A stretch of 64,000 nucleotides of DNA. It comes from Trichoplax adhaerens (Eukaryota > Animalia > Placozoa). Shown here one piece after another: positions 16,913 to 58,900 of the stretch. The notes under the pieces are model-generated. The model worked only from the letters and a program-made list of their open reading frames with translations. It made no database searches and was not told the origin of the DNA. The stretch is from positions 41,212 through 105,211 of the forward strand of contig NW_002060971.1 of NCBI RefSeq assembly GCF_000150275.1, given 5' to 3'. A program made the translations under genes and the position numbers. Each line of letters begins with the position of its first letter. Position 1 is the first letter of the stretch.

Positions 16913-19900
16913 TTATACAGCAGTTTGATAAGTGCCTTGCGCTGTTAGACCGTTTTCTTCGTTCTCTATTTCTTTATCGCATGATAAGTCATAACTTTCC
17001 ATCTCTTCTTGGGTTTTAGGAACAAACAACAATTTTACAAACCGCTATAGAATAAGATAATACGTTTAGATTAATCAGTATGCTGTTATATCAGTCAAGA
17101 ATATTTTGCAAATGCTAATGCTTACTTCTATTACTGTTCCTTGCGTAGTAAATATTTTGTAAATAGCTCCAATTACAATACCGGATAAACATATGGCCAT
17201 CATAGTCCAGCCAGCAAATTCACCCCACCATGGATAAAGATTGCCATAACCGAATGTAACAGGTTTATAGTCAATGCAGCTGAAAATGAATATCATCTAG
17301 TAGAGTGAAATAAAATAAGGCTATTAAGATAGTAAGAATAATAGTTTTAATATCAATCTACCTTTAAGCAGGTATTACCCATCGAATAAGAATCATTTAC
17401 GAATGCTGTACAGTATATTGGCTATTAAGTACGATAATAAGACAGGTTGTCTTTATATCATTCTATCCCTAGGCCAGTATTATCGATTAAATAAGAATCA
17501 TTTATACTATATAAAGGCTGTTAAGGAGCAGGACGAATTGTTTTAATATCAATCTACCCCTAGGCTGTATTATCCATTGAATAATAATCATTCATGCTGT
17601 ATAGCTAATAAGTCTACATGATTTGAAGAAATACCATGATCATTGCCGGAGTCATAATATACCAAGAAATTCTCCATGGAATCCAGACTGGTTTATTTAT
17701 AATTCGACTAATATTGTTGGCAAATCGGTTACCTCCTTTTCAATTGGATATTAACAAGACAAAGTGAATAATAAAACAGTTAACATCTGAAATTGATACA
17801 TTTAAAATCGCTTGATACGTCTATTTATCCTGTACCGTAGCAATAGCTAACAGCTACCAACTCAATAATGGCAGTTATAAATGCTGTAAAATCTGCGGTG
17901 TACCAACTGAGTAGTGTGATAATGTAGAATCCACCCTGTAAATAGCCAGCTGATATTATACACTCATATCTAGATATTTTTGCATTTATGTTATAAAATA
18001 TTTGATTAAGTAACGCAAATAGTATATTCATTTGTTAGACTAAAGTATTTATAGTTCCAAGTTTTTAATTAGTAGTGTACTAACCCTAGTTACGCAAATT
18101 AATCCAGGAAGAAACATGAAAATACATACACCAAGCGTTGTACATGGCCTATATGGTAGTAATTTCGGCCATAAATCGCTGAATCCAGTCGTTATAGTTT
18201 CCAAAGCACCCATCTGCAATAGGAAAAAGCGAATAATTAATCTAATAAGACTACTAATCAATCAACTTGCTGTTAGCCCTTACTATTCAATAAAGCGGAG
18301 TAAAATAATATATTCTAATCTGTAAGGGTAAACAGAAATGATTTCTATACAAATATAGTATAGACTTACCAAAGTGTCGATGCCAAGTGTAATCAACATA
18401 GCGAAGAATAGAACTGACCAAACATTAGCTCCAGGTAGAGTCGCTAAGCCGGCTGGATAAGTCACAAATGCAAGACCAGGACCTATGGAACAGTACTGAC
18501 ATTGATAAATAAACTATACAACTGCCCTCACAATTGAAAACCATTTTGTGATAGTATAGCTTAGAAGACATTAATTATTATTTCTCTTTTATGCCCTAGT
18601 ACATCTTGTCAAGAAATGGAAAACCGGACAGTAGACTGATTTAATCGCCGTTATTTTTAATAAGTAAGAATTCACCTTGAGTGGCTACTTGCGCAATAGG
18701 AACACCACCTTGGTCGGATAGATAGCCAAGGATAGAAAAAACGACAAAGCCACAGAAGAAGCTTGTAGCATAATTAGTAAGACTGATGATTATGGCATCT
18801 CTATAAATTTGGTTGTTAAAATGGGGTGAAAATGAATTATTCATGGTCATTCATGAATATCTGTACTATTTCAGTGGATAAACATTATTCGAATAGAATT
18901 TTTTAGCCCAGATTACCTTAAAATATTATTGTTTCTTTTATTATAACTAGCCAAAGTAATTGTTGGGCCAATACCAGTACCTAAGGAATAAAATATTTGT
19001 GTTGCTGCATTGCGCCAAGTCTGTAAATCAAGTGAAATTGGGTTAATGAATTGGATCATGGTCTTCCAAAAAAAAGTCGAATTGAAGCGGTAATGCCTTC
19101 TTCTATTGTATGCAGAAGAAAGGAAAAGATTTTTCTGAAATATTTTGTTTTCATAGAAACCTACCCTTGATTGCTTCAGTTTATCCAAGTCGACTCTTAA
19201 ATAGAAATCAATACCCAAACCAGCACCCTTTAATGTAATCCCTCGAAAGAATAAAACAATTAACACCAAGTATGGAAATGTGACCGTAAAGTATACCACC
19301 TGTTCAATTGAAAACCAGTATAAGTAATTCTATTTCGATAAAAATTATTTTGGGATTATGCTATTATGTCACTTTACATCAATTATAATATTGATTGCAT
19401 AAAGCGATTTTTGCTAATAGGATATGATTATTCCATACTTATTCTATAAAATGTAGAATTACTGGATATATAGACTTATCCAAGACATTAGCTAGACCGA
19501 TTCAGTCTATGTCATCTCTTTACGTTTTATGTTCATTTATAGTGCAGTATTTTTAGAAACTGTCGGATTTACCTTTCCTGACCATTTGATACCCTTGAAG
19601 ATAGAAAAGTAAACAACAATCCAAGATATAAGTAATAGCAGTGCTAGTTCCCATTTAATTGGCCCAAGGTTACTAGGATGATTACTTATTTCAAGTAATC
19701 CATGACTAGAGCGATCAAGAAAATATGAAAGTGATGAACTTAGGAGTAGTATGAAGATAATGAACAGTTTAAGTACATAAAGTAGTTGTTTTTGCATGTG
19801 AATAAATTGATAACAAACATCATTTAGTGTAAATAATTACAAGAAAAATTCTTCACTAGGAGAAGTTCCTGATACGTTTGGCATTGATTCATTTCCAGTC

Positions 19901-29700: not shown

Positions 29701-32700
29701 AAATTTGTGCATCCATTTCAATATCTACTATCTACCTGCATCCTAGCAGTCATTTACTACCAATTAATAATCGTTTGGAGCAATTTGCGCCTTTAGGTGT
29801 TCCGCTATGGTGTGAAGATTTACTTCATTGCCTGCTTTACGATGGGTATATCCATATAGTGCGGGCTAAAGAATATGATAGGATCGATGTTCGTCGTCAT
29901 TCTAGTTCCTCTACCGCTGGAAGTAGACGTAATTCTACCTTACTACTACCTTCATTTTGGTTTCGACGAGCATCAACTCGAAGTGAAACAGATCAAGGTA
30001 GATTTAGCTTGAATAAATCATCTTCTTCACGATCAGGCTCATCTATGGACGCTAGCCAGGATACTACCTCTAAAAAGAGTAGTATAGATCAAGCATCGAC
30101 TAACCAACGCAGAATTGCGTTTGCTACTGCCAATCCTGACTATTTACTCCCCTCCACATTAGAAGCAAATAACATTTGTGCCATTCCTAATGGCATTTCA
30201 TTATCAGCTATTAGAATACCTGATCCGATAGCATGTAAGTTTCATCAGCTGCTTTTAAAATTGGCTTTATACTATCTTAATTTTACTTGTCAGTTTTTTT
30301 ATATGAGATTAGGTTAGATCTGATATAGCTTTACTTGCTAATAACATGCGATGATATAGGCGGATGGATTATCATCTTATTCTATACTTTGATATAGAAA
30401 TATTTGCAAATCAATTCGTTTTATTATAGCTGCTGCTTGAATAAAGCAGATCAGATCTAATATACTTTTACCTGCTAATGTTATGCGATTAGATAGAGGG
30501 ATGAATAAATCAGCATCTTATCCTATGCCGATATTGAATAAGTTTGCAAATCAATTCGTTTTACTATCGCTACTAGTTGAAAGAATTAGATCAGATCTAA
30601 TATACCTTTACCTGATACTGTTATTCGATTAGATAAGCAGATAGATTATGATTCTAGTCCATACTTTGATATGGAATAACTTTTGCAAATCAGTTAGTTT
30701 TACTATTACTGCTACTTGAACGAATCAGATCATATCTAATATACCTTTACCAGCTAGCGTTATAAGATCTTAGAGGCGGATGGACTATCATCCTATTTTG
30801 TAATTTTATACCTGCTGCTTGAATGAATACTGATAGCTGATTGCAACATGCTCAGTAATGATGATATAGAGGAAATTAGTACACCATAGCAAAGTTAACG
30901 CTTTATTTTATTTATATTTTCACAAAATCAAATTGCATACCGGCACTTTCTCATAATGAAATCAATTTATGTAGACATGTAGGTTTGAACAGGATAGATT
31001 TTAACACTAAATTTAAACTTTTTATTTTATATTTAGCCGCAATTCAAGTCAAAGTAGATAATTTATCACAATTAGATCAATTAATCATCAAACATGCTGC
31101 CGCAATTGGAGTTATCTTTACTCTAGATACTTTACATGAAATATTATTAGTCAATCAAAGTATAACTTTGGATATACTGCAGCAATGCATTAACCGACTG
31201 AAAAAGAATCAGCTAATAGAATGCGGTTCCTTAAGCTATGGCCAAGTACAGGATCCATCGAAGCAATTCATATTGCAAAATTCATGCCAATGTCTAGAGA
31301 GAGAAAAGAAAGGATGCTATCAATTGCGTTTTTGTACTGATGGCATACAGAGCACAATATATGAATTATTAACTACCGAACTTCGAAAAGATTTGCATAC
31401 ACGTATTGCAACTTATTTAGAATCAAGAGCATGTCAATGTCAGTCTTGTGGTGGAAGCCTATTTCAAACTTCTCATCGACCAGTATTTTATTTGTCCAAT
31501 CGATATTCCATCGCAAGCCAGCATAGTTTAACTATGTATATCCCCAAAGATAACGATAAAAGTCAGCCTACGAAATTTAATACACCCAATCAAGATCAAA
31601 TATTATATGGCCGAAAAAAAAGTAAAGCATTTCCTGATGCATTATTTAAGCGCCGCCATACATTACAAACTGAATCGGAATTCTCTTCAAGAAAAAAGAA
31701 TCATTCTAAACGTCGCTTTACGCTTCAGGAATTATCTAAACTTCAAGGTGATGAAGATAGCAATCGTTTAAGAACTGGTGTGAGTAAGCATCAGGAAACG
31801 AGTTCTACATCCAATCTGAATCATTTACAAATGAATAAAAGCAATGCTATACGATTGGAAGAAATCAATGAGATTCATTTCGATAAGCATCATCAACAGG
31901 ATGATGATCCTAAACCCTATCATGATATTCAAACTATGGATGAAAATCCTTCTACCCTTGAAGATTCTAACATGAACAAGGGCTCGATAAGATTAGCAAG
32001 AAAAAGTAATCGACGCCGTTCTAGTAATCGCTATCGTCGAATTTCATTGTCATTTTTACGTCAAAAACATGAACGAAGTCTGTCTTATAATACTAGAACT
32101 GGAGCTAAAAGCCAACCTTCATCGGCTACGAAATTAGCCTTGAATCAAGTTAGTAGCATCCACGAAAGATTGGATAATCCTTCTCTTGAAGGAATGAAAG
32201 GTAGCAATCCGATCGAAGTAGCTATAATACAAGTTAGCCAATCTGTCTTGAAATTTAGCGATAGTATTACCTCAGATGAAATGGAAGGATATAATTGGAA
32301 TCGCCGAAATCGAGTCAAGTCTAAATTAAAAAATAGTATGATTCGAAACAGTTGGCGTAAAAGCATCAAACTTATGTACCGAAAAGATCAATATAAATCG
32401 CCCAAATTGCCACAGCAGGCTTCATTCCAACTCGATGATTACGAAAGCTATCTTGATCAAAACAAACAGCCTGAATCTCTCTCAGTTAATAGAACGAGTT
32501 GTTACGATGACGTGAACTCAGCTAATCCAACATCCAAATGTAAATGCGATATCATATTAAAATCAATCTATGAAGAATTAATCCACCATTGGCGTTTAGC
32601 CGGGAATACTACCAAAGTTTTCCGCTATTTAATTGAAAGAGGCGCTGGAATGATTAATACCTCACCTATTAGAGCTTTAAATTATTTACAAGAATCTAAA

Positions 32701-35700
32701 AAGTTGCTAATTCAAAATTTATCCCTCAAGCAATACTACCAAAACGTCGATGATATCACAATTAGTCTACAGCTATCTATGCAACGTGGTGATAATAACG
32801 ATTTATTTAAAGATGATCGATTGGATGTCAGTAAAGATGAACTATTTCATTTAGAGCTACTGATAGGCCAGGTAATGTGGAAAATAAGTTCTATTTAAAT
32901 GCAAATCGTGGCAGTGTTTTATTTGTAGAGTTTTTCTGCTTAAATATGGTATGCGATGCGTAGACTCCTTAGATTAACAATGATTGTTATTTTAGGCTTA
33001 CTTAGCTAGCGATAATATCAATCGAGCAAAAGAACATTTCAGTCAACTACTGAAGGAATTGAGTTGTCCACAGCCACAAAATTTAACAAAATGTAAGTGG
33101 CAAATACTAGTTCAACAAATTGTCCAAAAACACCATCGCCAGCTACCGGAACAACACTCAGCGAATTCGAGGTAATAAATAACTCGTTAACAGATAAAAA
33201 TATCATGTAATAGATTCTATATTCTAATTGGTTGTATAATTCATTAATCGTTAATACCGATAGAAAGATATCCATTTACAAGTAAATCCATACTCTATAC
33301 ATCCTAGATACTATGCTAGCCTTGAAATAGATATTCGCCATTTTGTTTGTTCATCACTAATTATACTTATACATTCGATTGTTGAATTACTTATGGCCAT
33401 TATTAAATAATTTGTAATTTATATTATAATTTTCATCATAAATCGATGGGCAAGTTGATATAAATCTTTCTTTTATTTTATATGCATCTCATATATTATT
33501 ATATCATGAATAACTAATTAGTCATATTAGAAGTAGGCAACAATGCAATTGATATTTACCATTTTGTTGGGTGTAATAGCTTCACATTAATGATTTTCAT
33601 TTGTGCTTTCGACTGGTAACCTATCTATAGCTATTGTCATTATAAACTAATGGGCATGATCTTATGATGTTTCTCTCGAGCTATAGAACCGCGGAAGAAG
33701 AACTTAAAATTGCTCAAGCTAAATGCTTAGCTCATCTATATTACGTCCACCGCTTAAATAACGACAATACTCGTGCTTACGTGACTGCTCTGTTGCAAGT
33801 GAATAAAATAGAACAAGTTGACCAAGAAATTGATCAGGTCATATTTCTGAAAATACAATAAAAATAACCATTGATAATAATTGATATTTATACCATTTCT
33901 CGTGTATTGGCATAATGATTTAATATTTTTACCCTAGAGAATTATTGCTTATGCAGAGTTAATTGAAATATCTTTCGATCGAAAAATTTATGAACTATCT
34001 GATCGTTTACAAGTGAAAGCCATGCAAAGGTATAGCTACAAAATTTTATTAAAGAATCTATAACAGGTCTGGCTTAAAATGCTAGGTTATAAATAGTGAT
34101 TTTACCATTACTATAGTATCAAGGAATATGAAAATGAAATCAATGCTAAACTTCTAGAAGCTATGGTTCATTTGCAGAGTGTTCTGTTAGTCACCAAATT
34201 AGGTCGTGGATTATTGCAACAAGCAGTTGAACATGGTATGATAGATCTTTGCATCATAGTTTAATGCTATAGTGAATTAGAAATAGCACTAATTTAAACT
34301 AAAAATCATCATCATCCTTGTAATTCTTATTGAATTGCTAGGCCATCAAGCATTGAGGAAAGCTAACTTATTAGTAAGCATGGCTGATGACCAAGAAAAC
34401 ATAAAAGAAGAATCAAGTAATTTGTCAATTACCTCGACAATAAGGGCAAGATATAATACAGCCAGTAAATCCAATGCAGTGGCTTCCAAAATGTTAATTT
34501 TACCCATTATAGTTCAGGCACTTTTATTATCTGGCAGGTCTATACTGGAAAAATTGTGATGTTAAATAGTGTTCTTGTTCTTCATATGATATTGAATAAG
34601 ACTCTAAAATCTTTCTATTTTGTGAGAATAGTGAATCACTCTGCCATGAACAAATTTTAAATCTAAAGTTATTAGCGGGAGAAAAGTCAGATATTTTTGG
34701 TTTAACCTGGTATCATTGCTGTTTACTAGACTTAAACTTAGAAATAAGTAAGTAATCACTTCTGTTTGGATAGACATTTAAGATAGATATAGATTTTCAA
34801 TGAATAGATTTTTATCACTATTTGCAGATCAACATATTGACGCATACTATACTTTTGCCAACTATGTTGGTCAAGTATTTTGTGAGAAAATTCGTGACGA
34901 TGATACAATCTTATTTTACTACATCACTGCTAATCACGCATTATGGTAAGATTATTTCATTTTAACGACCTTACATCTTCTTTTTAGTTATACTATTACG
35001 GGATTCTTACTACAATTATTCCTATGATACTTAGGAATGCGAGACATAAATTATGGAAGATGGCAAACCAATATATAGAACTCGCTACAAGTTTGTATTT
35101 TAATCGTCTATTTTACAATATTATTTATTTTGCTCTTTCTCTCGAAGTCTTGTTAATTAATCTACTTTAAGTGATTTCATGGCCTTAATTAAGGAATATT
35201 TAATGTATATGATAGATATGGAATCAGAACACTTTACTATACTTCTACTGATTTTATTCTTTCCCTGATGTGCTATTAATTTACCTGCGCTAGTGATTTC
35301 ATGACCTCAATTAAGGAATATTCAATATACGTGATAGATATGAAACCAAAACACTTTACTATACTCCTGATATACTATTAATTTACCTACATTAATAACT
35401 TAATGACCCTAACTAAGGATTATATAATACATGGCAGATTTGGAACCAAAATACTTTTCTATACTGATGGCAGCAAGAGCCTATAGTAAAATTGTTGAAG
35501 CTAATTTATTGTGTTGGGCACAGCAGAAAGGCAATAATAAATATAAGCTTCGTAGCAAAAAGGTACTATAGATTGGATTTATCCTTTGACATTTTAACAG
35601 TGAATGAATAACTATTAAAATTCACTTAATCAACAGTCGATGAAAACATTGCATGCTATTTCGCGGAAATATCCTGTTATAAAGTCTCGTTGGAATCATT

Positions 35701-38375: not shown

Positions 38376-38723
38376 TTATGAATCTCCTTGACATGCACAT
38401 TGGACGTGATAGGTAGCGCGGATGATCTTTTTAAATCCATTAGAGCCACATTTTAGTTGTAAAGGAACTGTAGTAGTGTTAATAGATTGACAACATCTGA
38501 CAACCGGGCGATAAAAAGGAGGATCTATAGACGGGAATGAAGCAGAACTGCAGTAGCCAGCACAAGACTGAACAACTACACTGCCTGAACAAGTATCATC
38601 ACCAATTTTTTCACGATGTCTAAAGATATGTGTAACTGGAAGACAAGTCTTACTAGCTCCATGGCAATGCTGATGAAAGCAAATGATTGCCACTAAACAC
38701 CATAAAGCCAATTTATATACCAT
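38376..38723 (-). CDS. Secreted cystine-knot protein, glycoprotein hormone alpha-2 (GPA2/thyrostimulin alpha)-like, 115 aa
   Basis: Signal peptide MVYKLALWCLVAIICFHQHCHG. TCSGSVVVQSCAGYCSSASFPS, CCQS..VPLQLKC and CAC match the GPA2 pattern (TCxGSxVxQxCxGxCxSxxFPS...CC...VxLQC...CxC). NTT sequon. Single coding exon, with a probable 5'UTR intron (acceptor ~38768, donor ~39785). Confidence 0.85.
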   Translation of the reverse strand: MVYKLALWCLVAIICFHQHCHGASKTCLPVTHIFRHREKIGDDTCSGSVVVQSCAGYCSSASFPSIDPPFYRPVVRCCQSINTTTVPLQLKCGSNGFKKIIRATYHVQCACQGDS

Positions 38724-38824
38724 TATTACCGAATTTAGGATTGCAAATTGTAGTGTTATGCGTAAATCTATACAAAAAGAGAAAAGCAATGAATTCAAAA
38801 TGTTATACATAAGAAGAATTAGGA

Positions 38825-39240
38825 TATAGTTAATAGCATATTTAAAATGGCGATACCAAGATTTCGTATTTTCATGATCATAAAATTATATTATAGTAAA
38901 TTAAACACTATACGTGCACATTGTTTCTCGATATCGTTAATAGCATATTTAAAATAATGATTCCAAATTTTCGCACTGGTATACTCTTGATCACAAAATT
39001 ATACAACCGCAAGTTAAGCACTATATGTTTTTTCGATATTGTTAATTGCATATTTAATACAGCGATATCAAGTGAAAGCTTGGTATACTCTTGATCACAA
39101 CATTATATTGCCGCAAGTTAAACACTATATATTTCTCGATATCGTTAATAGCATATTTAAATAGTAATAGTAACTTTTCGCAATTGGTATTCTCTTGATC
39201 ACAAAGTTATATTATCCGGGAGTTAAATACTGTATGTTTT
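38825..39240. repeat. ~103 bp x4 tandem repeat in the putative 5'UTR intron of the GPA2-like gene
   Basis: gttaatagcatatttaa-like unit at ~38829, 38936, 39041 and 39143; ctcttgatcaca recurs. Confidence 0.85.
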
Positions 39241-42200
39241 TTTTGGAAGATGAAGCAATATCAGGAAATTGTCTATGACAAAAATCTAATTGAAAGTAGT
39301 GTATTATAAGTCTAGAGATATCACCTAGTAACTTTAACCTCTCAAGGATCGCTAATATAATACTTTTAGTACTGATTAGATTATTTTCAATATATTGCGA
39401 AGGTTTTGCTAACGTCGTCAAAGTTCTTTTCTCCATATTTTCGAACTAGAAATAGGTATCTGCATATCTTTATGCATTATGCAATATTTAAGCATATAGT
39501 AAGCCATGTAACATAAATAATGGAATGCCAGAAAGCATAATTTTACTAATATTTATGCGATATTATGCTAACTTTTATCTTTAAATGTAGGTATGATTAG
39601 ACAATTGTAATTTGTTACTAAATTAATTGGAATAGCGTAGAAAATAGTTCGAGAATGTAATATAATAATTCATAAATAACGAGACTATCCTAAGTGATGA
39701 CTGTTCGTTATTCTGTTTTACCTTAAAGATTTACAGATTTTTTTAGTATCAAATATCAGATATTTGCAATTTGATGTAAGCTTACCGCAATATCCTAGCA
39801 GATGAAGGAGTTTTCTCAATCAGTTTTAAAATGTAAATGTTCAAAGCTAAATATATCAGTGGCTTAAATAACCATTTAGCAAGTTAAATAAAAGCAGGTG
39901 AAATGAGTCTAATAAAGCATTTTGGTAATAGATCAGAATACGTATTGAAATTATACTTACATTTTATTACGAAAGAATAAGAAAGGTGATTTGTACTTCA
40001 TCAATTTTGTCTTGGTAACAAGATTAAGCTGTTAATTGAAGAAGGAGAACAATAAGGCTATTATTAGAGATACTAAATATAAATATTATCCCTAATATTT
40101 GTCTAAATTTACTATAAATAAGGCATAGTGAGCCTTTCAGCCTAGGTACCGATTTGTTACTTAATTAGATTAATTATTTTTTCATTCACAGTTGTTTACT
40201 AAACTATCGAAAAAGATCAATCAATGACTTGATTTTGATTTTCATCGCTGTTGCTAGAGTGATGGATACATGATTTCATTTTCTGCTATCACTTATTGCT
40301 AATGATAGCTTTATTATAGATTATTAGCGTGATAAATTAAAATCCAAATTAGTGCTAATGTTATTTTAAATTGTTGCGTAGCCATTTATCAAACTAGTGC
40401 TACTACCAGCTATGGGTAACTTGAATGATCTAGGAGATTCTGTATGAAAATGAAGAGAAAATTCTCCTATATTCAGTAAATGTTTATATTGTGCTTAAGG
40501 AATAAATTTATGACTAATTACCGGGGATAACACCGGAACATTGAAAAATGGACAAAATCGATCTATTTATAATATTTAATTTGCTATTCTCCATCGAAAA
40601 TCAATTCTGAGGAGACGCATATATTCTGACTTATATTTTTATTAAAACATTTAAATGTACGAATTGCAAGGCGGTTATTTCGGTATTTGTTTATATCATA
40701 CGCTACAATAATTAATCTATTAATCAAATTGCTTAGAATTTAACTCGTTTCATAAGTATTTCATATCTAAAGAATGAGCTAGAAATACTGAGTGCGAATA
40801 AGTCTACTACATTTAACTGACCAAGAATGAAAGTATTGTCTTGATTATATCTCGATTTAACAACAAATTAAATTTCATGAATTGTGTAAATGGAATATTG
40901 CCACTTTACATCACCAGATCATATATACGACTTTAATCTAAATAATAAAAGGTACGGTTAAAAGTTTTGTAATCCTCCATTACATTTATCAGTCTATCAG
41001 CAAACAAAACTATTTTGCCTTAAAATTCGATTATAATTTAGACATGAGCTTTAGATTTATTAAACTATAAATAAATCTAAATTAATTATAGTTAACTCTG
41101 TCTATAGATAAACGCTAACCTATTAAACAGCGCACGGTAGAATATAAAGGGTAAAGCTTGTGTTAAACCTTATCGTGTACATTTTAAAATTCAAAAAACT
41201 AGTTTTGTGTTGTGTTTTCCGTTAACCTTTTTGGAATTAAGCAAGCTTTAGTTCTGTATTCATTATGATTATATCTATGTAAAATGAAAACAGATGATAG
41301 CGATTGAATCAATTCACTGTATCAATTTCTTATCACAGATATTTTTGTATTTATGAGATATAAGCGATAAATTTTGCAGCTCAAATTTTCGAGTTCATTA
41401 TAACTAAAACTGTTTATGAAATCCCGGAATAAATTTAAAAATTAATATATTCTAGTTCATTTAAAATATGGACTTCTTAATATATTATGATAATGTGCAC
41501 CTATACCGTGAAGAGTATAATGATTTCATCTACGATACCGATGCCAATAACTGATAGCTATATTAGCTGAATTCTCTCAATTAACTTTATTAATTCTCAT
41601 AAATGTTGCCATAACATTAATTGATTCTATTAGTTTTATTGGATATTGACGATTAGTAACGCAAATTTAAATAAATTATTCATATAGCCATCCGGAATTT
41701 ACCGTAGGGAATAAATGATATACACAATTACCAGTTGAGCATTGCGATATACTTAATTAGATTTAGATTATTATCATGCTTTGATAGAGTATCCTTAATC
41801 AATAAATAATTGTAATAGGGATCGAAGTGGACGCTCGATGTAAGTACAGAAGGTACAATAACTTTCATTATCCTATTTCCTTTCTCTGTAGATGAAAATA
41901 GTTTAATAATTTACTTCATAATGTTTTAACTTACTCACATGGAAATAAGTTTATGCATAACTTTAGGCATAATCATGGTAGAAGTTTCCATTTTAATGAA
42001 TTGCAAACAATGGATCTACTTTTTACTAATCACTTGCATCTGACTTTAAATTTAAATCTAATTAGAAAATTTACAACCGATTTTAACTGGCTAGTATCAT
42101 TTAAACAATATATACTGGTCAGTGTCACGGTTAATAGAAATGTTAATAGCATTGTAGGTGAATAACACAGATTTAGTTGATTAATTAATTAATCAAACGG

Positions 42201-43279
42201 GAGCAGAGTATAATATAAAATGATTTTGTTAATGCTAGCAGAAATTTTGAATTAGAGTTGCTATTAGCATAGATCTAGTCATCATTCTAGTTTGACTATA
42301 TCTTATTAAACTAGCTTCATACCATTTTAAATGTGATATTGATTATGCCATACCTTCTAACACCGATATATATCGCTTTGCTACAAGCCTTAATATTTTA
42401 TGATTAAAGTATTTTGTGTCATGACTATATGTAGGTAAAGAAAGAATTATACTATAAATTACTTAATGCTGATCAAATAATTATTTCAGATTGAAGTTTA
42501 TTATGATAAATTAATGACATATTTCTAATTTAGGTAAATAAAACCGTTATGACTGCATTGAAAACAGAAGTCTTTTTTATAAAAAATTGATATTTTTATT
42601 TAGCTAGCGTATCCGTTAACAATTCATTGAGTAATGTGATTGCTAGGATTGCTCGGAAGTCATTGAATTAATTTGACAAGCTTTATTATTATAGGTTATC
42701 GTATATTCTTGCCACGCTGAGAATAAATAATTTTTCTGACATAATGGAAATAAATTAATTATCTTATTTTTACTGATTCTTTTCTTACTCTTTATATTTA
42801 TAGCAATTTATAGAATTTGACGATTCTTTTACTTGTATCTTTATCATTAACCAGGCCTGCGGCACACATATATATACAGGTAATTACGCTCAAAAGCTAC
42901 TCATTCAAATCTTCTATGTTAGAACTACCCACTCTGATAAAATTAAAGCTCAGAAGCAATAATCTAGTAAGTTTTATCGTCCAATAGTTTAATATTTATA
43001 TTAAAGCATAGATCAGAAATAGCAATCCTAGTTCAGTTTTATCTATAAACAATTTTAATTTTTAAAGTCTTGCAGCATTTAAATTATTAAATTTTAAATT
43101 TTTTTTTAACATTTCAATAAATGCCAGATTCCAAATAGTTATGCTGTAGTACTTTGTGTCTAGATCAATTTTGTTGAAATTGTCTAATTCATTTTTAATT
43201 TTTATATTTACTGTTGATAACTTCAAGATTTTCTGCTCAGCTTTCTTTTGCACTGAATTATTTCTAAGATTAGGAAAAG

Positions 43280-43609
43280 ATGGCTCTAGCAAAAGCAACG
43301 TCCATTACTATAACACTCATGATGATGATAAGTTGTTTCTATCCCGCTCAAGTGACGGCATGTGGTCCTGCACTTTATCAGGATTGGTTAAAATTACGCG
43401 GATGCCAACCACGTCAAGTTGCCTTGAAAATCTGTGAAGGTTGGTGTACTTCTTTTACAAGAGCTAAAAGCTACGGATATTCGACTACAGTTTGTCATCG
43501 TTGTGAACCTACTGGATTTAAGAAGATTCCCATCACAGTTATGTGCGATGGTGCACCTCGTGTAGAGTATCTTCGTTCAGTGACAGGATGCAGTTGTCGT
43601 AATCATTAG
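43280..43609 (+). CDS. Secreted cystine-knot protein (DAN/gremlin-, bursicon- or hormone-beta-like), 109 aa
   Basis: Hydrophobic signal peptide ending in ~VTA. Pattern C-x13-C-x9-CEGWC(TSF)...CHRCEP...C...CSC contains the CxGxC and CxC knot signature. aagATGG start context, TATATATA at ~42869 and a probable 5'UTR intron donor at ~42967. Confidence 0.88.
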   Translation: MALAKATSITITLMMMISCFYPAQVTACGPALYQDWLKLRGCQPRQVALKICEGWCTSFTRAKSYGYSTTVCHRCEPTGFKKIPITVMCDGAPRVEYLRSVTGCSCRNH

Positions 43610-55660: not shown

Positions 55661-55926
55661 AATGATTGATTCGTTATTAAAATTGGCCAATGATTGCCAC
55701 TATGGTTAGATTAGAGATGGATAGAATTATTAGAGATTGATCATGTCATGATAGGATTGTTTTAGGCAATTTTTTGCTAGTGATTGGATGATTTTTTTGT
55801 GTAGTCGATGAGTGCGATGAGTAGGAAAAAACTGAAAAAAAATGGCTTACGCTTGTTTTTCTCTCCTTTTAGATTGTATTTTTTCCCTTGTTTTAGTTAT
55901 TGCTACTATCATTGAATGATTGTAAC

Positions 55927-58900
55927 ATGGATGAACAACAAGCAAGAAAGCTAAAAGTGGTTGAATTGCGAACTGAAATCAGTAAGCGTGGCATCGTTCC
56001 AAAAGGTAATAAAGCGGCATTATTACAGACGTTATTGAATGCATTGAAAGAAGAAAGTGAAAATTCACCCCAACAAGAAGAACAAGCTATTGAATCGCCA
56101 GTACAAGATACTAGTGACAATGAGAAAGAAGTAGTACAAGTACAGTCGTCGTCGATTGAGGAAGAAATGGATGTTAGCCAACAAGATACTACTATCGATG
56201 ATACACTGGATGCTCGACCATCTCCTTCTAAACGACAAATGGCGAAAAAATCCGCACGTAATCGTCAAGCTAATGATGCCGCTAATGCAGATGATAATCA
56301 ACCATCAACACCGATTCAGAATATCTCGGTAGTAGAAGAGGATCAATCAACGGATGCAATACAAGCTACCATTGATCAGCGCGATATTGAAGGTAATGCT
56401 AGCGTCTAGCAGTGATGTCGAATTAAAGAAAGGAATCGATATCAGTCAAAATGACCTTAGTTAGACGCCAATTTAACGAGGTGGTAGTACAAAAGATAGT
56501 TTTACAATCGATCCTTCATCATTGAAAGATGAAGTTTCAAATCATTGCTACTGAAATACGGTGATGATAACGAGAATGATTCTATCTTTAGATAAAGTTA
56601 CTAGACAGTATAGAACGCTAGAAAACGTGAATAGGAAGACGTTGTTGACTAGTGCATGCATAGGACTAGGCAATACCTGGTCCAATTAAAGTCGTTATAG
56701 ATAGATCATCGTCTGGAATTCATTTTTCAATCATACTTGTCATCTAATTTACGATCTTTTTTTTTATTAATTTTAGAGAGTGATAGTAATAATGCACAAC
56801 AAGTAGAAGCTACAAGTCAAGCTACGTCGGAAAAGGAAAGTGACAAAGGAGTTGAAGAAGCCACCAATGAAATGGCTGCTGTTGTTGATTCTAAGCCTAT
56901 GGTTGAAGAATCTACGGGTGATAACGAAGTAAATAAAATGGAACAGCCTGAGCAAAGCATGACTACTGCTGTTGGTGGTCGTAAACGTAAAGCTGATGAA
57001 GCATTGGATAATGCTGATGATAGCAAAACTGGTCAAGATCAGGATGAGGGCAATAGCGCTGCTGCTGATGACGATATGCCTGCTTCTACTGTAGAAGCGG
57101 ATAGCAAGTCTACATCACGACAAAGGTTAGTTATTTTACTTGTCGAATTACCAACTATCTAATTCACCTTCCGTGCTTGATGGGAAAAAATTTTTGAACT
57201 TATCTATTTGATAGCCTTATATGTACAGAAGTGGGTTAACGTCTTCATAAGGAAGAGTTACTTGTTTGGGGTCATAAGGACTTAATTAGGATATACGCTA
57301 CAGTCGAATAAAAAAACGATAACAATTCGATGCAATGTTATTTGTAGTACTTATTGAGTGTTGCGATTCATCAATCTTTACTTACAATTACATATACTGT
57401 AAATTACAGTCTAGTAATTATTGTATCTTTTGTTAAATGTCATGCTGCTACTATTGATCTAATCAATATCACACATCAGATTTTATCATGTCAAATTCCA
57501 ATCTAAAATGTTATCTTCTTTGTATTGCAATTAACGAATTAATCCATATCCCATTTTAAATATTATTACTTATAGCGAAGAGCCAAGTGATTTCTGGTCG
57601 GAAGAATTCGACGAGTCGGCATTTGTGCTAGATCGATGTATGTATCAATCTTTATATTACATAGCTCGAAAGAGAGTAATGAGCAAATTTGTTTAAATTT
57701 TTCCTACAGTATTCAGGAAATAGTCAATTACTTATGAACTAGTACATTTTCCCACTCTTAATACTTTGCGTATTCGTACTGTCTAGACTGCTAAGTGTAC
57801 TATTATATTGTTATGATACTTCAGTATCGAATGAGCTATTCATAACGTACTATCGGCTGCATGAGTTGTATAAATTGATAGCCTAAGTGATGCAACTGAC
57901 TGCACGGATGTACAATATATGCTTTGACAGTAATGAACTTTATAATTCCTATGCAGCCATTGTCTTCAGTAGTTGAACTTAATGCCAAAAATTTCACCCG
58001 TTGTTAAGCAGTTATATGACTTTCCTTACAGACAATTCGGATTTGCACGTAAAAATCTCCAAGGATGGATTAATTACCGAAGACTATTATAAAGGTGGAT
58101 TTGCATATCTATGGGGAGGTATTCGTGCAACCTACGGCGCAAAAAGTGGCAAAGTCTTCTATGAAATCAAGGTCGATATTCCACTTTTTCAACAATTAAA
58201 AATTATTAGTATCAACATCGATTGAATACTTATCTATAGAAATGATTCTAATTTATTCAAATTAGATATTTTAATGGCTACTTTATGTATAGAAAAACTT
58301 CTTAACTATTCCTATTTTTGCATATTGTTTGATATTCTAAATCTTATTCAATCAAGAATCAATCAGTATCTGTCTGCTAAGCTGCGTCTGTTTAACGTAT
58401 GTTATCTTTGCTTTTCGATAAAGATTTTGCAATTTTCCTCGGTTGAATTACCGGATCCTGAAACTCATAAAAATGCTCTACGTGTCGGTTGGTCAGTGGA
58501 CAGTCCATATTTTCAATTAGGTTAGTAGTATTATAGAAATCTCAGATAAGGTTGTCGTTTGATTTACGCATTGCTATACGATATATGCGTGAAAGCCTTA
58601 CGGATACACTCTTATTAATCTTTTTTAATGACTTTGTTACAGGTGAAGATAAATACTCTTATGGCTTTGGAAGTTCAGGAAAAGCAGCGACTACCAGTAA
58701 CTTTTTCAGTTATGGTAAAGAATTTGGTGTTGGAGACGTTATAGGCTGTTATTTGGTAACTATCTCGTGTGCACTATATCAGCCAAACTTCTGTTCTAGT
58801 TATGATGTTATGATTTCGTTAATCCTCTTTTTAGGATCTTGAATCGGAACCTAGTACTGTGGGCTTTATGAAGAATGGTGAAGACTTGGGTTCTGCATTT

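Follow-up and report, generated by a model that had tools for sequence, protein, structure and literature searches.

The cystine-knot hormone group (CKHs; glycoprotein hormones, bursicon and DAN) is a family of dimers, and the dimers of Norrin and of the VWF CK domain are cross-linked through a CxCC motif. For bursicon and the 11-Cys CKHs, AlphaFold models place inter-chain bridges at 8-9', 9-8' and 14-14'. Covalent dimerisation is presumed for non-bilaterian CKHs whose Cys count is odd, and CKH subunit genes are typically close together (PMC9910494). According to Roch & Sherwood, homodimers are the likelier state outside bilaterians (PMC4079206). We describe here a placozoan locus in which two such genes adjoin and in which each chain keeps a different half of the CxCC motif.

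The window, 64,000 nucleotides of Trichoplax adhaerens contig NW_002060971.1, contains a minus-strand gene (chain A) and a plus-strand gene (chain B) that are immediate divergent neighbours, each encoding a signal peptide followed by a single cystine-knot domain. The first-pass annotation had described two divergent, small, secreted cystine-knot genes with single coding exons, ATGs about 4.56 kb apart and no recognisable gene between them, possibly from a nerve-less early-branching animal. This description holds: each coding region is one uninterrupted ORF, at 38376..38723 on the minus strand for the Burs/GPH-like chain A (115 aa, stop codon at 38376-38378) and at 43280..43609 on the plus strand for the DAN-pattern chain B (109 aa); the ATGs at 38723 and 43280 are 4,557 bp apart, and the source is a placozoan. 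The genes themselves are known. Chain A is letter-for-letter identical to 'B/GPH_Placozoan' of Roch & Sherwood 2014, and chain B is probably, by elimination, their 'Grem placozoan' from the same scaffold, such that at least chain A, and probably both, were already listed in that survey (PMC4079206). We found no published mention of the two as immediate divergent neighbours, or of nine-Cys chains with complementary halves of a CxCC motif, and no published heterodimer model of the pair.

The longest chain A ORF spans 38376..38810, the biologically sensible start being the ATG at 38723 (MVYKLALW...), which opens a hydrophobic N-terminal leader. The signal peptide covers about residues 1-22, and the mature chain (23-115) carries nine Cys (27, 45, 54, 58, 77, 78, 92, 109 and 111) and one conserved N-x-T sequon, N82. 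Upstream of the signal-peptide Met lies a putative intron (38768..39324, minus strand; GT at 39324-39323, AG at 38769-38768), which includes a 104-bp tandem repeat present three times at 38924-39239. A gene model of Trichoplax sp. H2, P0001, has the translation of 39436-39325 continue in the frame entered at 38767, and its N-terminal 37 residues match the ORF 39212..39436. The corresponding putative first exon (39325..39436, minus strand) is coding in this automatic model, but is more likely 5'UTR, because a signal peptide must be N-terminal. The 5'UTR intron proposed earlier for both genes is thus supported for chain A, indirectly, by the H2 splice and by the canonical GT (39324) and AG (38768) in the window. 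In chain B, the signal peptide covers about residues 1-27 and the mature chain, about 28-109, starts at or beside the first of nine Cys (28, 42, 52, 56, 72, 75, 89, 104 and 106), with a CxxCxP motif at 72-77 and no N-glycosylation sequon. Between the genes, an AT-rich spacer (39437..43279, neither strand; GC 0.28-0.30), unique in the genome, presumably holds the putative promoters of both. The ORF scan gave no ORF of at least 80 aa wholly within it, and searches between the two genes turned up neither Rfam families nor tRNAs nor genome-wide repeats. Listed ORFs of 93 and 78 aa overlap the start of the chain B gene and are not wholly intergenic.

Are both ORFs genes? Both are missing from the original JGI gene set and had to be predicted with fgenesh by Roch & Sherwood (PMC4079206), and the H2 orthologues, TrispH2_004944 (chain A) and TrispH2_004945 (chain B), are annotated merely as hypothetical proteins, as might be expected of chance ORFs or decaying copies. 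Against this, both ORFs are intact with signal peptides, and all mature-chain Cys are kept in the three or four placozoan lineages compared, with sequence identities of 64-83%. TrispH2_004944 is 99% identical to chain A, and orthologues in other placozoan-like assemblies are 70% and 64% identical; chain B orthologues, TrispH2_004945 among them, show 82-99% identity, with 82-83% in those other assemblies, so the two chains evolve at different rates (64-70% versus 82-83%). The motif VRCC...CACQGDS is found in all three placozoan lineages for chain A, and VCHRCEP in four of four chain B sequences. In addition, the AF2 monomer of chain A is a confident cystine-knot fold (pLDDT 82) matching VWF CTCK, Norrin, PRDC and C. 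elegans alpha2, and an AATAAA lies downstream of its stop codon. Non-functionality of either ORF is highly improbable, being effectively refuted by the conservation across placozoan lineages.

The 105.6-Mb Trichoplax genome yielded just four DAN/CKH-like loci, two of which are chains A and B. Trichoplax has about 11,500 genes, which puts the chance expectation of this adjacency at about 0.001; with two of four loci neighbouring, chance is not the explanation. The H2 orthologues also have consecutive locus tags. Divergent orientation adds little, since one in four neighbouring gene pairs is divergent. A profile-profile comparison of the two chains (21% identity over 82 columns, E 0.011) agrees with the earlier view that they are not recent duplicates. 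Both are anciently diverged secreted cystine-knot proteins of the GPH/bursicon/DAN group.

The nearest sequence relatives of chain A are 11-Cys cnidarian-type CTCK/'Burs/GPH' proteins, which have CxCC...CxCxxC, and a single-sequence search places C. elegans alpha2 (E 2.5e-4) first among its solved relatives. The 'GPA2 pattern' first assigned to it is therefore only partly apt: chain A has CC like GPA2 and alpha2 as best solved relative, but lacks the terminal Cys that defines GPA2, and its nearest relatives are of the 11-Cys type. Likewise, the 'DAN/bursicon-like CxxCxP' of chain B is present, but it is the DAN (gremlin/NBL1) pattern and not that of bursicon, which is CxCC. Chain B lines up with NBL1 at each of its nine Cys, CxxCxP included, and Pfam DAN (PF03045) matches chain B with 37.8 bits (cut-off 22), chain A remaining under the cut-off at 16.3. 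The AF2 monomer of chain B is poor (pLDDT 48). The best solved relatives of chain B are NBL1 (E 0.003), Norrin (0.03) and gremlin-2 (0.1), with C. elegans alpha2 at 0.5 and beta5 absent. No paralogue of chain B was found in the Trichoplax genome.

A rival reading, almost as probable as the one preferred below, takes the neighbours for paralogues whose functions differ: chain A would be a Burs/GPH-type LGR ligand acting alone, as homodimer or monomer, and chain B a minimal DAN-family BMP antagonist, trapping BMP-type ligands as a non-covalent homodimer, the pair being a relic of tandem duplication left unseparated in a compact placozoan genome. The exact nine-Cys antagonist pattern and the Pfam scores favour this, and BMP2/4, Bmp3, Gdf5 and a working TGF-beta pathway offer possible targets in Trichoplax. 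In structures of the DAN-family antagonists PRDC and gremlin, which share the nine-Cys CxxCxP pattern, the Cys equivalent to the lone one of chain B is unpaired in non-covalent homodimers, so complementarity between A and B may be coincidence. Adjacency can also be a duplication relic, since GPH, Grem and SOSD genes neighbour one another in animals where gremlin is no hormone subunit, tandem duplication having been proposed, and the placozoan 'Grem' was listed from the B/GPH scaffold (PMC4079206). Moreover, a single chain can suffice: in vitro, FSHR-1 can be activated by C. elegans alpha2 without beta5 and by beta5 without alpha2 (PMC11004728). However, cluster annotations show Pfam DAN on many GPA2 and bursicon proteins as well, and antagonism does not follow from a match; chain B has neither the N-terminal extension nor the FCYGQCNSF(Y/F)IP block conserved in gremlins (2014 alignment, PMC4079206), and CxxC is present too in a cnidarian-type protein, P0009. 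An HMM of cnidarian-type Burs/GPH-like proteins scores chain B at 32 bits, above Trichoplax NBL1 (20.8, from one exon only) and SOSD (13.0), and the nearest language-model clusters are GPA2 (0.93-0.90), then gremlin-2 (0.83). With its knot-only architecture, chain B thus looks more hormone-like than antagonist-like. Separate functions would also give no reason for the lone, conserved Cys77 in chain A.

We tentatively prefer, with a probability of about 0.4, to read chains A and B as an ancient tandem pair, most likely the subunits of a single secreted dimer acting as a ligand; the first-pass annotation, which proposed co-regulated subunits of a heterodimer, is in this respect partly supported. 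Chain A is the sole Burs/GPH-like gene in the Trichoplax genome, so a second hormone chain must come from the DAN-pattern genes. Each precursor would shed its signal peptide and fold with four internal disulfides, three knot bridges and an L1-L3 loop bridge, leaving a single free Cys per chain, Cys77 of A and Cys72 of B. These would be the two halves of the ancestral CxCC, of which chain A retains the second Cys only and chain B the first only; in relatives with 11 Cys, the first C of one chain is disulfide-bonded to the partner's second C. An A:B dimer of ancestral geometry could therefore close one inter-chain disulfide with no free thiol, whereas A:A or B:B would need a register change to do so. 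The genes would be co-expressed, and the dimer would act on one of the two type-A LGRs reported in Trichoplax (PMC9545775).

The predicted A:B heterodimer has an ipSAE of 0.77 over three runs; the best of three controls, which included no homodimer or paralogue, reached 0.02. In a calibration made mostly on microbes, 51 of 78 solved complexes attained this ipSAE mark, as did 2 of 108 mismatched pairs. Contacts agree by at least 98% between runs, with a partner pLDDT of at least 89. The lowest-error contacts join the CxGxC strands (A 53-58 with B 56-62), which form a central reciprocal sheet in C. elegans alpha2/beta5 as well (PMC9910494). The predicted interface of chain A is more conserved than the rest of the chain (27 of 33 versus 26 of 51 non-Cys positions, p = 0.005). 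Both free-Cys segments, A 75-80 and B 72-77, are inside the predicted interface, the A77-B72 pair being outside the 25 lowest-error contacts listed. Where a family has solved dimers, such a prediction may pass through memorised structures, and in the method's own tests close relatives of a true partner passed in 10 of 12 cases; as all family members dimerise alike, the model cannot tell a heterodimer from two homodimers.

Two homodimeric ligands in shifted register (77-77' in A, 72-72' in B), on different receptors (for example one type-A LGR each, or, in the manner of Norrin, a receptor of Frizzled/LRP type), seem unlikely to us. Norrin, which chain A matches closely in structure, forms homodimers and has several receptors, LGR4 among them. 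The ancestral state is considered homodimeric (PMC4079206, PMC9910494), the geometry is not absurd, a single 8-8' link having been the expectation of Gong et al. ahead of their modelling (PMC9910494), and Trichoplax has 46 LGRs (PMC9545775). Yet two independent register changes would be required, no data favour homodimers over the heterodimer, and the heterodimer model is confident relative to its three controls.

How does this putative two-chain ligand compare with known systems? By structure and by profile, chain A and its family match Norrin and the VWF/mucin CTCK domains best (VWF CK E 1.9e-9; Norrin TM about 0.5-0.6). These are homodimers with 11 Cys, the CTCK domains are ends of very large proteins, and Norrin signals via Frizzled4/LRP5 as well as LGR4. 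With the DAN-family BMP antagonists (NBL1/DAN, gremlin-1/2), chain B shares the nine-Cys CxxCxP pattern and the Pfam match, but it has no N-terminal extension or gremlin core motif, adjoins a hormone-type gene and resembles NBL1 and gremlin-2, its best solved relatives here, very weakly (E 0.003-0.1); BMP binding would be a candidate activity.

Bursicon alpha and partner of bursicon also have odd Cys counts and form a heterodimeric cystine-knot LGR ligand, with inter-chain disulfides modelled at CxCC (PMC9910494), and their genes are adjacent in some insects (PMC4079206). Both, however, have CxCC and a terminal Cys (11 Cys, three inter-chain bridges), which neither placozoan chain has, and the bursicon receptor is a type-B LGR, none of which is reported in Trichoplax (PMC9545775). 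Chain A was filed by Roch & Sherwood with the cnidarian 'Burs/GPH' (B/GPH1 and B/GPH2 of Nematostella, Acropora and Hydra), which occur in dissimilar pairs, two of them in Nematostella lying close on a scaffold that also carries SOSD (PMC4079206). Among the small CTCK proteins that make up the closest chain A relatives found, one comes from Clytia and another, judging by its source label, probably from Aurelia. In contrast to the 11-Cys cnidarian proteins (CxCC and terminal C), chain A lost two Cys, and Trichoplax has one such gene only, with a DAN-patterned neighbour.

Thyrostimulin, GPA2/GPB5 (C. elegans GPLA-1/GPLB-1, PDB 8ENB), likewise consists of small knot-only secreted chains of about 85-95 residues, usually encoded by adjacent genes, and type-A LGRs exist in Trichoplax (PMC9545775). 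Alpha2, the best solved match of chain A in the single-sequence search, belongs to a quasi-symmetric dimer with reciprocal CxGxC strand pairing, and the same strands pair in the A:B model; like GPA2, chain A has CC in place of CxCC. Pfam Hormone_6 did not match the placozoan pair. GPA2 has 10 Cys and a '9-14' bridge within the chain, whereas chain A has no Cys14 and hence an odd count; of Cys8 and Cys9, both absent from GPB5, chain B retains Cys8. Unlike the non-covalent alpha2/beta5, the A:B pair would be disulfide-linked.

The two genes are transcribed divergently, that of chain A from the minus strand and that of chain B from the plus strand, and the ORF listing places both at the coordinates proposed in the first-pass annotation. 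The longest frame for chain A (minus strand) runs over 38376-38810, with a signal-peptide methionine at 38723 that gives a protein of 115 amino acids; the chain B frame (plus strand) spans 43280-43609 and encodes 109 amino acids. The distance between the two ATGs, which had been put at about 4.56 kb, was measured at 4,557 bp, and the spacer is indeed devoid of any recognisable gene, with no ORF of at least 80 amino acids wholly inside it, no Rfam family and no tRNA. Its sequence is unique in the Trichoplax genome (assembly of 105.6 Mb, 1,414 contigs; the window has a GC content of about 32%). Each coding region consists of one exon, again as annotated. In Trichoplax sp. H2, the orthologues are consecutive genes, TrispH2_004944 (99% identical to the chain A protein) and TrispH2_004945 (chain B).

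An intron in the 5'UTR of chain A had also been proposed, and an intron upstream of its signal-peptide methionine is likely: the H2 gene model has an extra upstream exon, and the corresponding splice maps onto the window with GT at 39324 and AG at 38768. Since signal peptides are N-terminal by necessity, we take the upstream exon to be 5'UTR and not coding sequence. Inside this putative intron, positions 38924-39239 hold three copies of a 104-bp tandem repeat (76% match). In two placozoan chain A orthologues, P0002 and P0003, the called start lies just 12 residues ahead of the predicted cleavage site (MAVVCFYHHCFG...), which suggests that in these lineages either the signal peptide starts on the upstream exon or the gene call is truncated. 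Farther away in the window are a sodium:neurotransmitter symporter exon (18913-19299, minus strand, SNF PF00209, E 9e-25), about 19 kb past the chain A 3' end; a 637-codon open frame (30985-32898, plus strand) that is rich in Ser, Lys and Asn, matches no Pfam family and is probably a single large exon of some uncharacterised gene; and an open frame (55900-56409, plus strand) that falls just short of the Pfam SAP-domain cut-off (22.4 against 23.9 bits).

In other placozoan-like assemblies, chain A has orthologues at 70% and 64% identity, and chain B has orthologues at 82-83%. All cysteines of the mature chains are kept in the orthologues of both, and an N-T-T sequon is kept in those of chain A. 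Judged by these sequences, both genes are real and conserved; that the pair is non-functional seems very improbable. One chain B orthologue, P0018, is on an 8.2-kb contig, and metagenome scans for synteny of the pair elsewhere gave no match.

Neither gene is new. Roch and Sherwood (2014, PMC4079206) catalogued four Trichoplax members, B/GPH, Grem, NBL1 and SOSD, with 'fgenesh from scaffold 31' as the source of the first two. Chain A is identical in every letter to the B/GPH_Placozoan row of that catalogue. A genome scan with Pfam DAN returned exactly four loci, two of them, on other contigs, being NBL1 and SOSD as published, and the other two chains A and B. Since the other three members are thus accounted for, we infer by elimination that chain B is the 'Grem placozoan' of the same catalogue. 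The accessible portion of PMC4079206 makes no remark on the two genes being immediate neighbours, nor on their pairing. A search of the available literature found no later paper on Trichoplax ligands of the cystine-knot hormone (CKH) kind, and the two genes go unmentioned in the placozoan cell-atlas papers searched, the supplements of one among them. The genes are known; what is new is minor, namely their immediate adjacency and the complementary loss of cysteines.

Both chains are cystine-knot hormone-like proteins (GPH/bursicon/DAN/CTCK). They share the pattern C...C...CxGxC...C(C)...C...CxC of this superfamily, which is defined by six knot cysteines (among them CxGxC and a C-terminal CxC), an additional L1-L3 pair and a secreted domain of some 85-95 residues. 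The AF2 model of chain A (pLDDT 82) matches the folds of VWF CTCK, Norrin, PRDC, gremlin, C. elegans alpha2/beta5 and FSH beta. This model-based search confirms the superfamily and does not separate branches within it. The chain B monomer was poorly modelled (pLDDT 48) and was left out of the fold search.

To which branch does chain A belong? It scores under the cut-off for both Pfam DAN and Cys_knot and gives no Hormone_6 match. A single-sequence search gives C. elegans alpha2 as the best solved relative (8ENB chain A, E 2.5e-4; the entry is alpha2/beta5 according to Gong et al., PMC9910494). When 1.84 billion representatives were searched exhaustively with the chain A profile, the matches outside placozoans comprised two large repetitive proteins and six small CTCK proteins of 96-128 amino acids; one of the six is from Clytia and another probably from Aurelia, going by its source label. 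A profile built from chain A and the six small proteins finds VWF CTCK (E 1.9e-9) and C. elegans alpha2 (8e-9) about equally well, with C. elegans beta5, Norrin, NBL1 and gremlin ranking after them. The language-model clusters nearest to both chains are GPA2 (0.93), ahead of gremlin-2 (0.83-0.85), which we take as a lead only.

The first-pass annotation ascribed a GPA2 pattern to chain A. GPA2 has ten cysteines, with a CC motif and a terminal CxCxxC, the last cysteine of which forms an in-chain bond with the first C of CC. Chain A does have the CC, but it ends in CACQGDS and has nine cysteines, the same in three lineages; the terminal cysteine that caps the motif in GPA2 is absent, and chain A departs from the GPA2 cysteine pattern. 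The 11-cysteine B/GPH pattern, common also to bursicon, Norrin and sponge CKHs, does not fit either: the cnidarian-type relatives read CxCC...CxCxxC and chain A reads VRCC...CACQGDS, having neither the first cysteine of CxCC nor the terminal one. Its small CTCK-like relatives, its short N-terminus and its name in PMC4079206 place it with the non-bilaterian B/GPH peptides. From its sequence, the most fitting label for chain A is Burs/GPH-type, with a reduced set of cysteines.

Chain B has the sequence pattern of the DAN family (PF03045), that is nine cysteines with CxxC replacing CxCC, and its Pfam score of 37.8 bits clears the cut-off of 22. All nine cysteines align with those of NBL1, C72-H-R-C75-E-P falling over C-D-S-C-M-P. 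Of the 'DAN/bursicon-like CxxCxP' pattern attributed to it earlier, the DAN part therefore stands and the bursicon part, whose pattern differs, falls away. Among solved structures, its closest matches are NBL1, Norrin and gremlin-2, none of them strong (E 0.003-0.1), with C. elegans alpha2 at 0.5; PDB matches up to E 10 included neither C. elegans beta5 nor any GPH beta chain, and among Pfam families there was no Cys_knot match. GPB5 was considered and rejected, since chain B retains the first CxCC cysteine (GPB5 has one cysteine at this site and lacks both extra ones) and has no beta-chain similarity.

These features bring in the possibility that the neighbours have separate functions, chain A as a hormone and chain B as a BMP antagonist. 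The cysteines of chain B, in canonical DAN arrangement, and its best matches point that way, as do the Grem label and the GPH/Grem/SOSD neighbourhood known from animals whose gremlin is no hormone chain, both from PMC4079206. However, chain B is not a clear BMP antagonist, for three reasons. Firstly, Pfam DAN is also common to many GPA2 and bursicon clusters, which carry PF03045 too. Secondly, it is knot-only. In gremlins the knot is preceded by a long N-terminal region, and a FCYGQCNSF(Y/F)IP core is conserved from cnidarians to man (PMC4079206); in chain B the mature chain begins at or adjoining the first cysteine and the core reads ICEGWCTSFTRAK, so that, with neither the extension nor the gremlin core, it was rejected as a gremlin orthologue. 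Thirdly, it is closer than NBL1 or SOSD to the cnidarian-type proteins: with a local HMM of the six small ones it scores 32 bits, against 20.8 for Trichoplax NBL1 (an underestimate, since the NBL1 gene is intron-split, its exons were scored apart and 20.8 is the score of one exon) and 13.0 for SOSD. Likewise, the chain B profile prefers the six cnidarian-type proteins over NBL1, SOSD or chain A. Moreover, P0009, a cnidarian-type relative of chain A (ENA, 123 amino acids), has CxxC in place of CxCC and keeps the terminal cysteine, so the CxxC variant extends beyond canonical DAN antagonists. Altogether, separate functions are a serious contender, if somewhat short of an even chance.

Word-index and exhaustive protein searches yielded placozoan and cnidarian-type relatives only as tree material. 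The 14-row tree of these placozoan and cnidarian-type sequences has no starred branch and does not separate the families, with SOSD and NBL1 on long branches. As for further subunits, a genome scan with PF00007 matched the NBL1 and SOSD loci only, and family profiles run against the Trichoplax genome gave no paralogues of A or B. PF00236 (Hormone_6) had a lone match (L008 1501-1677, at G000:C1414:10432351-10432527) of 18 bits and E 0.19 with no knot pattern, which we attribute to chance.

Once the knot and the L1-L3 bridge are assigned by alignment, Cys77 of chain A and Cys72 of chain B would be free. In the modelled dimers of 11-cysteine CKHs and of bursicon, three bridges join the chains (8-9', 9-8' and 14-14'), and the Cys 9 and Cys 14 of alpha2/beta5 bond in-chain instead (PMC9910494). 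The same paper states that non-bilaterian CKHs with odd cysteine counts are presumed to be covalent dimers. In this numbering, where Cys 8 and 9 lie within CxCC and Cys 14 is terminal, chain A retains Cys 9 alone and chain B Cys 8 alone, and Cys 14 is present in neither. With the ancestral geometry, an A:B dimer could therefore close a single 9-8' bridge and would have zero free thiols. We found no published description of this complementarity. The argument has a weak point: 'Cys 8 only' is the norm in DAN-family antagonists. In the PRDC and gremlin structures, the Cys 8 equivalent is simply unpaired.

Alternatively, each chain could form its own homodimeric ligand. The authors of PMC4079206 prefer homodimers outside bilaterians; the same closure in A:A or B:B would need a register shift. 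Two homodimeric ligands seem unlikely to us.

The mature chains, A (23-115) and B (26-109), were folded together with ESMFold2 as a single pairing, in three runs and with three controls. The ipSAE was 0.77, 0.77 and 0.76 in the three runs, against 0.02 for the best of the three controls; the mark applied is one that 51 of 78 solved complexes attain, as do 2 of 108 mismatched pairs. The runs share at least 98% of contacts, with a partner pLDDT of at least 89, and the lowest-error contacts join A 53-58 to B 56-62, the CxGxC strands. The free-cysteine segments of both chains are within the predicted interface; the A77-B72 pair is outside the 25 pairs listed. Interface residues are conserved above the rest in chain A (p = 0.005), with no such excess in chain B. 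This model supports binding and does not show it. The pass may reflect only family likeness, because the superfamily dimerises alike and like complexes are solved.

That A and B form a heterodimeric hormone is, in our estimate, a reasonable hypothesis, not established, with a probability of about 0.4. In its favour are the immediate adjacency of two of the four family members, the presence of only one hormone-type gene in the genome, the complementary and putatively free cysteines kept across placozoans, the minimal, hormone-sized chain B, the confident alpha2/beta5-like predicted model and the two type-A LGRs reported in Trichoplax (PMC9545775). Beside the DAN character of chain B, its Grem label, the GPH/Grem/SOSD neighbourhood of other animals and the published preference for homodimers, it is weakened by a prediction that cannot discriminate and by chains that evolve at unequal rates.

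A more specific form of the heterodimer, which we put forward tentatively and would not call probable, is an obligate, singly disulfide-linked placozoan hormone made of a Burs/GPH-type and a DAN-patterned chain, with opposite CxCC halves, acting on a type-A LGR. Each chain having kept the opposite half, only the mixed A:B dimer could close the ancestral CxCC cross-link, and it would act on a type-A LGR in a nerve-less animal. If true, alpha/beta-style heterodimeric cystine-knot hormones originated before bilaterians, a DAN-type chain can be a hormone subunit, and the hormone and BMP-antagonist branches are tied to one tandem pair. On whether the first LGR ligands were homo- or heterodimers, published views conflict, and the relation between the hormone and DAN/BMP-antagonist branches is likewise contested (PMC4079206 versus PMC9910494).

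The test system available in Trichoplax is very small: one Burs/GPH-type gene, an adjacent DAN-patterned gene and two type-A LGRs. The chains, of about 85-95 residues, are easy to express, and the complementary single free cysteines make a sharp prediction, a reducible A:B band. Should it fail, the locus would be a tidy ancient tandem pair of cystine-knot paralogues kept side by side, adding nothing new to the 2014 catalogue. The known system with which the predicted A:B heterodimer compares is C. elegans alpha2/beta5, which has at its heart the same reciprocal sheet of CxGxC strands that the lowest-error contacts of the model form (PMC9910494).
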